A stretch of 63,991 bases of DNA, counting the filler, from Olpidium bornovanus S191 (taxonomy: Eukaryota; Fungi; Olpidiomycota), in NCBI GenBank assembly GCA_017911155.1. It is 32 parts of 32 records of this genome, joined end to end, with 100 filler letters (N's around TTAATTAATTAA, not from the genome) between each part and the next. Parts side by side here need not be neighbours in the genome. Positions count along the whole stretch, not along the records: positions 58,377 to 61,026 come from JAEFCI010005192.1; 31 more parts are not named here. The stretch is one strand, 5' to 3'. Positions within the stretch are counted from its first letter, which is position 1. Each line of letters begins with the position of its first letter. Positions 58,604 to 60,468 of this stretch are shown here, in pieces. The translations under genes and the position numbers were made by a program. The notes under the pieces are model-generated. The model was not told the DNA's origin, searched no databases, and saw only the letters and a list, made by a program, of their open reading frames with translations.

Positions 58604-60468
58604 TTACCGCTTTGCGACAGCGCCATCCTTCCCCCCATTTTCCTTGTTGCCTTCGATGAGGTGTGGATGCAGGGGTGTGGCGGACTTGTACCGCCGTGAC
58701 AGACCGACCCTCAAAGCTGTGGGGGTGCCCTTGAGCACCGAGAGGCCGCTGACCCCCGGGCCGCCTGAAGTTCGCGGGGCGTAAGAAAGAGCGACGCACA
58801 AAAAGCCGGCGGGCTGTTGGAAAGGAGCAAAAGCGGCCCACCGGTTTCTCGGACCCTATTCGCTCCCGGCGTCGACGGGGCTCGCTGAAGAGCAGACGGA
58901 GATGACACGGCCTTCCTTGCCGACTTAGCTGCTTGCACTGCTGGGCACGGCGAAAGAATGGCAGTCTCGTAATTACGTTCCAAGCCAACCCGCCCAAAGC
59001 GGACCCGGAAAAGAGATGTTTTTTACCTTTCCCAGACGTAACCTTGGTCGCAGCTTTTGGGGCAGACTTCGGAACGCCCATTGTAGCGATATTTGCCCGC
59101 GGCTTCCGTTCTTGGCCTTTCGTCGACGCGTTCGTCTGTCTTGGCGCTTTGCCGCCCCTCGCGGGTTTCCCGGACGCCCTGCGCCTAGAACTGCTCGCCG
59201 CAAAGTCTTCGTCGTCCACCTCAAAATCCGAGCCTTCGCTCTCGTCCAATTCTTTTGGGAATCGTAAAGAGATTTCTGATAAGCACAAGAAAGAGCTGCC
59301 AACGACGAGAGAGGACAGATGCAGTTACAGATACAGGCAACAGAAGAGCTGTACCAGATTCCCCGCCCACGCTGAAAGAGGAAGCGTCGTCGCTCTCTGT
59401 GTCAGGATCCACTTCTTTTAGTTTGTCTTGGACAGGCCTCGGGACACTATTCACCGCAGACCGTTTTGCGCTTTGATTCTCTATGACTACTCTGCACTCT
59501 GGCGTATTCGATATTTCTTGAGCGCCTGTCCCCTGCGGTCCGCTTGGCTCTGGTCCCTCCCGGCCTCCAACCACTGTCAATTTCTCGTCGCCGCCCGATC
59601 CGGGTGGTGGGCTCGCAATCTCGTCCGTTTTTTGCGGAGCGTCGTCGAAGTCAGACAGGTACTCCAAATCGCTGGATTCGCTGTCAGCGACCTGCGCCTC
59701 GTTCTTGGACAAAGCGATCGCCCTCGCCAGTTCTACCCGCTCGCGTCTTTCTAATGGGGACAGGCGCTGCCGTGTTGTATTTTTCGAGCTGGGTGCACAG
59801 ATGGTGTTCCGTTAAGGGACGGCGTTTCGTCATCGGGGGGACGTGTTGATAAACAAATTTAAAGCGTACTCCGGCTTCGAAGAATCCGTTGGCTTTTTTC
59901 GTCTCTCCTGCGATGACGCGTCCTGGCAGCGCTCTGCACGGGTTGCCCGCGGCACCTCCATGAAGTCCTCGTCCGAGTCACCGCCTTTTGGAGGACAAGC
60001 GTAGTCAATTTCGACGGGGTCAGGTTGAACCTTATGACCGGCTATGTCGAAAGTCTCGCAGGGTCCCGAGGATTTGCGGAGGGGCCGAGAGGGCTCCGCG
60101 CTCGTATCTCAAACGCCCCCCCGCAGCGCCGTTTTTCGAAATTGGTCGGCTTACCGTGGGTCGTGCCCCGCTTCCCGGAAACGACCGGATCCACGACCTC
60201 CGCATAGTTCACCGCCTTGCGCTTCCTTAAAAGCCCAAGCCGACGAATGTACGTCAGTCGGGATCAACGCGGCGCGGGCGCACCGAAGGACTTCACGAGG
60301 CGACGCCGATCTCCCTCCTTCTCCCGTCCGCGACGCCAGAAGAACCTCGGGCAGCCTTCTCTCCCACTCCAAGACTTCACGCGACGTGGCCGCGTTCCGC
60401 CTCCCCTGCCTCTTCGCGCAACCCGCCCGGTCAGCCGTCCGCTACCTCGTTGCGCGTCGTTCTGACAT
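58604..60468 (-). CDS. RAD51AP1: RAD51AP1-like protein, complete, 7 exons, about 383 aa
   Basis: Exons 60468-60446, 60225-60155, 59984-59870, 59788-59355, 59275(or 59251)-59027, 58940-58842 and 58764-58604 are all GT-AG and in frame. Motifs RKRKAVNYAE, GDSDEDF, ELARAIALSKNE, acidic ESEGSDFEVDDEDF, and C-terminal LRVGLSRRYKSATPLHPHL. Confidence 0.72.

Follow-up and report, generated by a model that had tools for sequence, protein, structure and literature searches.

A transcribed seven-exon gene on the minus strand

The DNA analysed here is a stretch of 63,991 nucleotides (nt), in the following called the window, joined from 32 parts of the assembly GCA_017911155.1 of Olpidium bornovanus S191. 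One 2.65-kb piece of it (positions 58377-61026, record JAEFCI010005192.1) was read on the minus strand, and a gene model was rebuilt from the sequence. The gene encodes a protein that resembles RAD51AP1, an accessory factor of the recombinase RAD51, and is probably a divergent member of this family. It extends from an ATG at 60468 to a stop codon at 58604 and is composed of seven exons and six introns (220, 170, 81, 103, 86 and 77 nt). All six introns are of the GT..AG type with consistent phases. The joined coding sequence comprises 1128 nt with a G+C content of 60% and encodes 375 amino acids; its alternative frames contain 9 and 10 stops. The original prediction of a seven-exon minus-strand gene with GT-AG introns and consistent phases agrees with the rebuilt model, although the length of about 383 amino acids given there has to be corrected to 375.

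Exon 1 (60446-60468) comprises the ATG and encodes MSERRAT plus 2 nt of the following codon; its junction to exon 2 (60446/60225) is present in RNA contigs. Exon 2 (60155-60225) encodes the basic sequence RKRKAVNYAE, matching human RHKKPVNYSQF, and exon 3 (59870-59984) the acidic GDSDEDF (59962-59982) followed by a basic stretch. The large exon 4 (59355-59788) contains a single predicted helix (residues 81-103) with the UIM-like segment ELARAIALSKNE (59698-59733), the patch SSDLEYLSDFDD (59641-59676) and a long acidic, disordered linker. An acid block ending in ESEGSDFEVDDEDF is located in exon 5 (59027-59251), where a basic, putative DNA-binding tract begins. This tract (58715-59201, residues 232 to about 339) spans introns 5 and 6 and continues through exon 6 (58842-58940), which also carries an S303-P and a T313-P site. 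The last exon is short (58604-58764, 161 nt, residues 324-375) and contains the putative RAD51-binding module and the stop codon. Within this module lie the Site-M-like sequence LRVGLSR (58694-58714, residues 340-346), which matches human 332-LRLGLSR-338 at six of seven positions, and the Site-C-like PLHP (58664-58675, residues 353-356), identical to human P344-L345-H346-P347.

The seven-exon gene is real and expressed. All six junctions were found at exactly the modelled positions in RNA contigs of runs X1 and X2, which derive from two studies of organism A, and five of the six in run X11, which is of unstated type and comes from a third study. Of the words sampled from 58604-60468, a share of 0.60 is present in the RNA runs, corresponding to the exon fraction of this interval (1128/1865). 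The raw-read runs X13, X16 and X22, at 6% sampling too thin to serve as evidence, had no reads here. Thus, the gene is complete and spliced as originally proposed, and the junctions, for which RNA sequencing had been named as the check, are present in the transcripts. Contigs of X1 and X2 begin at 60587/60588 and reach 58502 or beyond at the 3' end. The transcribed unit (58502-60588) therefore includes a 5' untranslated region (UTR) of about 120 nt and a 3' UTR of at least 100 nt. No upstream ATG was found in the RNA-supported 120-nt 5' UTR.

Some further observations concern the 5' end of the gene. Intron 1 is retained in a 277-nt RNA contig (60198-60474; X1 and X2), where read-through stops after eight codons (MSERRATR*); this contig represents either unspliced pre-mRNA or a non-productive isoform. 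At the start of the RNA contigs, three CCAAT boxes spaced exactly 11 nt apart (CCAATTTTGCG CCAATTTCACG CCAATTTCAC) are located on the minus strand at 60572-60598. CCAAT boxes are frequent in promoters of cell-cycle-regulated genes, and the three boxes may be promoter elements. Further upstream, the untranscribed region contains a (TG)n microsatellite in which the unit occurs about 10 times (about 60722-60741).

Motif order and the putative RAD51-binding module

S, A, R, G, E, K and P are abundant in the 375-amino-acid protein, which contains only three Tyr, three His and five Phe, and no Trp. Its charge is unevenly distributed: residues 1-31 carry 8 K/R and 3 D/E, residues 40-88 carry 14 and 8, residues 101-231 carry 9 and 34, and residues 232-340 carry 22 and 2, respectively. 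The basic tract upstream of Site-M thereby has a net charge of about +20 over 108 residues. AlphaFold2 modelling of the exon-4 piece yielded a single helix at piece positions 11-33 (protein residues 81-103), with the remainder disordered, and on the basis of this piece the protein is predicted to be intrinsically disordered. Along the protein, the motifs follow each other as RKRKAVNYAE (8-17), GDSDEDF (33-39), ELARAIALSKNE (89-100), ESEGSDFEVDDEDF (218-231), the basic tract and LRVGLSRRYKSATPLHPHL (340-358). Every motif listed in the original prediction was located in the rebuilt protein, in the order given there.

For comparison with the human protein, PDB chain 9qn8_B ("RAD51-associated protein 1", 364 amino acids) served as reference, and six segments were matched exactly in the PDB sequence library: the N-terminal motif RHKKPVNYSQFDHSDSDDDF (chain residues 8-27), the helix segment DDKLYQRDLEVALALSVKEL (93-112), the DYLDLD segment SNCSVASDYLDLDKITVEDD (145-164), the acid block PGEDSEDDSDFCESEDNDEDFSMRK (204-228), the WVPP segment of Site-N SAESKKPKWVPPAASGGSRS (298-317), whose string was taken from a 2026 preprint, and the Site-M/Site-C segment KSPNQSLRLGLSRLARVKPLHPNA (328-351). 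The four human strings given in the original prediction are exact in this chain, with a few flanking residues added (8-27, 93-112, 204-228 and 328-351). In local alignments, the N-terminal motif was best placed at residues 8-39 of the protein here with a 12-residue insertion, the LxxAxxxS helix at 89-100, the DYLDLD patch, weakly, at 106-119, the acid block at 212-232, and Site-M/Site-C at 334-357 with a one-residue insertion; the WVPP segment gave only a spurious PPxxSGG match.

In the N-terminal region, the human combination of K-x-V-N-Y followed by DSDxDF, contained in RHKKPVNYSQFDHSDSDDDF, is present as RKRKAVNY ... GDSDEDF. The central LxxAxxxS helix (human DLEVALALSVKE, chain 100-111) has its counterpart in ELARAIALSKNE, and the SDF...DEDF acid block with a basic region after it is found as GESELDESEGSDFEVDDEDF and the basic, putatively DNA-binding tract. 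By position, this tract corresponds to the DNA-binding domain of human RAD51AP1, which is bipartite. The landmarks lie at 8-39, 89-100, 212-232 and 340-356 of 375 residues here and at 8-27, 100-111, 205-225 and 334-349 of 364 in the human chain. The similar length noted originally likewise holds (375 amino acids compared to 352 for human RAD51AP1).

The C-terminal module reads LRVGLSR-x7-PLHP here and LRLGLSR-x6-PLHP in human. Yeast two-hybrid analysis of the 335-amino-acid human isoform had shown that R316A, L319Q, L328A and H329A weaken RAD51 binding, while R321A, L322S and K326A leave it intact (PMC1636435). All four of the required residues, i.e. R333, L336, L345 and H346 of isoform 1 (R316, L319, L328 and H329 of isoform 2), are kept. 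The binding mode on the RAD51 filament was solved only in 2025 by cryo-electron microscopy (cryo-EM). In this structure, H346 and L345 of Site-C lie in a shallow groove of RAD51, Site-M (332-LRLGLSR-338) occupies a pocket at the protomer interface, where R333 pairs with RAD51 D50 and L334 and L336 fill hydrophobic sub-pockets, and the WVPP of Site-N makes a weaker contact to the neighbouring protomer (PMC12704761). An exchange of RLGL to AAGA abolishes binding, filament stabilisation and the stimulation of strand exchange (PMC12704761). Of the residues known to hold RAD51, those of the proposed end motif are identical here or, in the case of the pocket residue Leu334, conservatively replaced by Val. 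The motif is placed at the extreme C-terminus in the short final exon 7, whose junction is seen in RNA, as in RAD51AP1 and RAD51AP2, where it is also encoded by a short last exon (PMC1636435).

We assessed the collinearity with a chain score, i.e. the best ordered, non-overlapping sum over the six verified human segments, which reached 191. Shuffling in blocks of 20 residues, which keeps the local composition, gave 140.2 ± 9.3, and none of 1500 shuffles attained 191 (Gumbel p about 5e-4). Global shuffles scored 121.0 ± 7.6 and the reversed protein 126. When all 720 segment orders were ranked, the natural order was fifth. The four better orders place the WVPP segment before the acid block, and in two of them the UIM-like and DYLDLD segments are reordered as well. 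An earlier run with five shorter strings, taken from the original prediction with its N-terminal one split in two, had given z = 8.8 against block shuffles, with the natural order best of 120. In addition, phmmer was run with the human sequence X-masked outside the 129 verified residues. This yielded 22.8 bits in one end-to-end alignment (human 21-356, here 33-363), compared to maxima of 21.9 bits among 5,000 block-shuffled and 10.6 bits among 5,000 globally shuffled decoys and to 4.0 bits for the reversed protein. The proposed collinear motifs thus score beyond composition-preserving shuffles. Because the segments were chosen post hoc and the acid blocks give the shuffle tests a heavy-tailed null, we read the shuffle and masked-phmmer results as worth a p of roughly 1e-3 to 1e-4 and not as a routine database E-value.

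These numbers bear on the possibility that the resemblance is due to chance, the gene encoding a low-complexity protein without a role at RAD51 whose composition, together with the choice of motifs after the fact, produced the match. Such an explanation would fit the Pfam E-value of 0.7 described below, which is at chance level across 24,736 models, and the selection of the motif set with both sequences in view. However, no shuffle of either kind attained the observed collinear score, and reversal of the protein lowered the chain score from 191 to 126 and the masked-phmmer score from 22.8 to 4.0 bits. The strict pattern LR[LVIM]GLSR-x(5-8)-PLHP, which was defined from the two sequences after the motif had been seen, is expected only about 3e-6 times per proteome of 5 million residues. 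Moreover, the substitutions listed against a sister species spare the motifs. We consider a chance resemblance highly improbable.

Similarity searches and sequence variation

Family searches were run with separate exon pieces. With Pfam, each exon being searched singly, the sole match was a weak one of exon 7 to PF15696 (RAD51_interact), which was also the only family matched by this exon. The verified human 24-mer reaches 58.7 bits on the same profile, which is tuned to vertebrates. The UIM profile (PF02809), applied to a 27-residue cut-out of exon 4, scored 15.2 bits (E 0.019, profile positions 5-16 of 17) and did not reach its cut-off of 21. Phmmer with exon 7 against 1.84 billion representatives returned the sequences P0001 and P0002, matched in 21 and 29 stretches, respectively. 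P0001 was rejected as a relative: it is a translated tandem repeat with units of about 64 residues, and its score is a summed artefact. P0002 shares its many-stretch pattern. For the word-seeded homologue searches, whose outcome is given below, stop-free carriers served as references, which made candidates of full length eligible.

Feature searches in the ESM Atlas were restricted to named clusters, with 100 matches each. For exon 4, UIM clusters ranked at the top (0.80), and five of the 100 matches were chordate clusters named "RAD51 interacting motif domain-containing protein" (0.69). Exon 5 retrieved six chordate "putative R51A1 protein" clusters with PF15696 (0.54), and nothing useful was obtained with exon 7 alone. 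Exons 4 and 5, which do not contain the RAD51 motif, thus both reach one rare family, a coincidence that composition alone would hardly explain.

Substitutions were compared with a sister species, organism B, which has a DNA identity of about 90-93% and expresses an ortholog with introns 4, 5 and 6 at identical positions. The only listed exon indel between the two measures 3 nt, while indels in introns and UTRs measure 1-2 nt. Among the 40 listed of 105 reported differences, 13 changed codons were synonymous and 19 non-synonymous. Within the motifs, the listed changes (Y15, A16, A95, L96, K98 and F231) were all synonymous, whereas those at residues 183-200 and other linker positions were mostly non-synonymous. 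This pattern is expected of a disordered protein held by short functional motifs. Exon 6 was the least changed exon, with one difference per 100 nt, compared to 7-8% in exons 4, 5 and 7.

Exon 6 encodes AVSSPSALQRAPSTPGA, in which two S/T-P sites precede Site-M by about 30-40 residues. Human S277 and S282 (isoform-2 numbering), located in the DNA-binding domain, are found at a similar distance upstream of Site-M. A regulatory conservation of the S/T-P sites of exon 6 is possible.

The RNA contigs also revealed variation of another kind. At position 59420 the window has an A, and contigs of organism A (X1 and X2) and of organism B have a G, so that codon 193, in the fast-evolving linker, is CTA (Leu) in the window and CCA (Pro) in RNA. 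This is a strain polymorphism with the window allele as the odd one out. In run X9 of organism B, two contig variants cover the same stretches within 59355-59667, with 9 and 13 differences, respectively, which points to two alleles or homeologs and thus to a possibly heterozygous or polyploid organism B. Variant joints with extra letters in between were also seen in organism B at 58935/59029 and 59985/60171.

Several results weigh against an assignment to the RAD51AP1 family. The RAD51-interacting-motif profile, which had been named in advance as a check, gave only 10.6 bits for exon 7 (E 0.7, profile positions 19-38 of 39), below the cut-off of 25. The phmmer search of exon 7 had no match other than P0001 and P0002, neither of which is taken as a relative. 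Word-seeded searches with exon 5, exon 4 and the UIM/SIM part of exon 4 found no relative in the collections searched, and metagenome scans with exons 7 and 4 were blank. A PDB sequence search with exons 7, 4 and 5 and a 23-residue motif (E <= 10) gave no RAD51AP1 match with 9qn8_B in the library; this outcome is expected, because in such a search a 20-mer scores no more than about 31 bits even when it is identical. The Atlas scores of the RAD51AP1 clusters (0.54-0.69) lie under the level from which the tool itself speaks of more than a lead. Within the module, the spacing between Site-M and Site-C is one residue longer than in human, and Site-N was not found: the 375 residues contain neither WVPP nor any Trp, [FWY]xPP or [FW]xxP. 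As to the statistics, the human segments for the shuffle tests were picked with both proteins known, and among 5,000 block-shuffled decoys, two lay no more than 3 bits below the real masked-phmmer score. Finally, the list of substitutions against organism B is a partial one.

As to full-length similarity to animal RAD51AP1, sequence searches with single exons gave no match, and the motif-chain and masked-phmmer scores exceeded all decoys, with segments chosen post hoc. This situation could also arise by convergence, if an unrelated, disordered nuclear protein had independently gained a RAD51-binding motif and worked like RAD51AP1 without being its homolog; the CK2-type acid blocks, the UIM-type helix and the basic tracts would then be generic features of chromatin proteins. 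RAD51AP2 indeed shows the motif in a protein otherwise unlike RAD51AP1, acid blocks score well even in block-shuffled decoys, and no database or profile search was significant. Against this stand the five motif classes in the order of human RAD51AP1 and at similar positions, the N-terminal pairing of K-x-V-N-Y with DSDxDF, which is not generic, and the retrieval of RAD51AP1 clusters by exons 4 and 5, each without the RAD51 motif. Convergence hence appears distinctly unlikely.

Taken together, the motif-level evidence argues for homology, and the gene is quite probably a divergent member of the RAD51AP1 family. Of the original RAD51AP1 assignment, the collinear motifs and the kept RAD51-binding residues stood, while the PF15696 score (10.6 of the 25 bits required), the lack of a significant database match and the missing WVPP did not bear it out. 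Since the Pfam threshold and Site-N tests failed, we file the protein as a divergent rather than a typical member.

Proposed function, origin and relation to known proteins

Neither the kind of protein nor its mechanism is new, and we infer RAD51 and DNA binding from the human cryo-EM and mutational work. Accordingly worded for the protein here, a disordered nuclear protein would dock on the RAD51 filament via the part encoded by its last exon. PLHP (Site-C) would anchor it in the shallow groove at the surface of RAD51, and LRVGLSR (Site-M) would enter the pocket at the protomer interface, by which the filament would be stabilised and loop L2 ordered. The basic tract and the N-terminal basic patch may bind DNA. 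In this way the protein could connect the filament with the donor duplex and promote synapsis and the formation of D-loops. Partner binding or regulation is the likely role of the LxxAxxxS (UIM-type) helix and of the acidic S/D/E blocks, and the S-P/T-P sites of exon 6 are likely sites of regulatory phosphorylation.

RAD51AP1 has been called a vertebrate-specific regulator of homologous recombination in papers up to 2025, including a 2025 review, in line with its original description here as an animal or vertebrate factor. In the open literature, no paper on a fungal or protist RAD51AP1 was found, and the motif strings used as search words found nothing. A RAD51AP1-type helper is probably present in a microbial eukaryote too. 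Beyond this, we tentatively suggest, with somewhat less than even confidence, that the family predates vertebrates and perhaps the split of animals and fungi, and that an early-diverging fungal lineage has kept it, unannotated, in an ancestral form with a better UIM match than the human segment and without the WVPP/DMC1 site. WVPP and the split that gave rise to NUCKS1 would then be later animal additions, and the gene would have disappeared from the Dikarya, the model yeasts among them.

This scenario depends on the taxon. The gene call could be right and the piece nevertheless stem from a eukaryote outside the fungi, for instance a holozoan or some other protist, as nothing in the 2.65 kb points to the organism. 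Introns of 77-220 nt and a G+C content of 58% fit what is generally known of a G+C-rich early-diverging fungus, though they are not specific, and we regard a wrong taxon as rather unlikely. If the taxon is confirmed, the origin of the accessory factor moves much earlier. A microbial ortholog with Site-M and Site-C and without Site-N would define the conserved core as filament clamp, acid block and basic tract, and would provide a simpler organism for the genetic study of RAD51AP1. On the practical side, the protein collections searched did not contain the gene, and it reached only 10.6 bits on PF15696, which shows how easily intron-rich, motif-only disordered proteins are overlooked by annotation.

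Two relatives of RAD51AP1 were considered as labels and rejected. RAD51AP2 has the same C-terminal RAD51-binding motif in a short last exon. However, it comprises 1159 amino acids and has only this motif in common with RAD51AP1, whereas the protein here also has the N-terminal and central motifs. NUCKS1, the vertebrate paralog of RAD51AP1, is likewise an acidic/basic disordered protein and resembles the protein here in its N-terminal motif (R-K-V-x-Y...D-E-D-Y) and its central acid block (GSDEDF). In every vertebrate examined, NUCKS1 is without the C-terminal RAD51-interacting domain. Because this domain is present here, the protein is of the RAD51AP1 type or of an undivided ancestral type.

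With UIM proteins (PF02809), the protein shares the core of ELARAIALSKNE, which fits Phi-xx-A-xxx-S-xx-e and lies inside the only predicted helix, and UIM clusters were the nearest to exon 4 in the Atlas (0.80). The UIM-like segment, putatively of the ubiquitin-binding type, differs from these proteins in staying below the Pfam cut-off (15.2 compared to 21 bits). The corresponding human RAD51AP1 segment gets no Pfam match at all. Further differences to human RAD51AP1, also named PIR51 and represented in the PDB by 9QN8 and 9QNC, are the lack of the Site-N WVPP, which in human contacts DMC1 and provides a second contact to RAD51, the 12-residue insertion between VNY and DSDEDF, and the unrelated linkers. 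Common to both are a comparable length (375 and 352 amino acids) and the order of landmarks, from the N-terminal VNY/DSDxDF through the helix, the weakly matching DYLDLD-like patch, the acid block and the basic tract to the terminal LR[LV]GLSR...PLHP.

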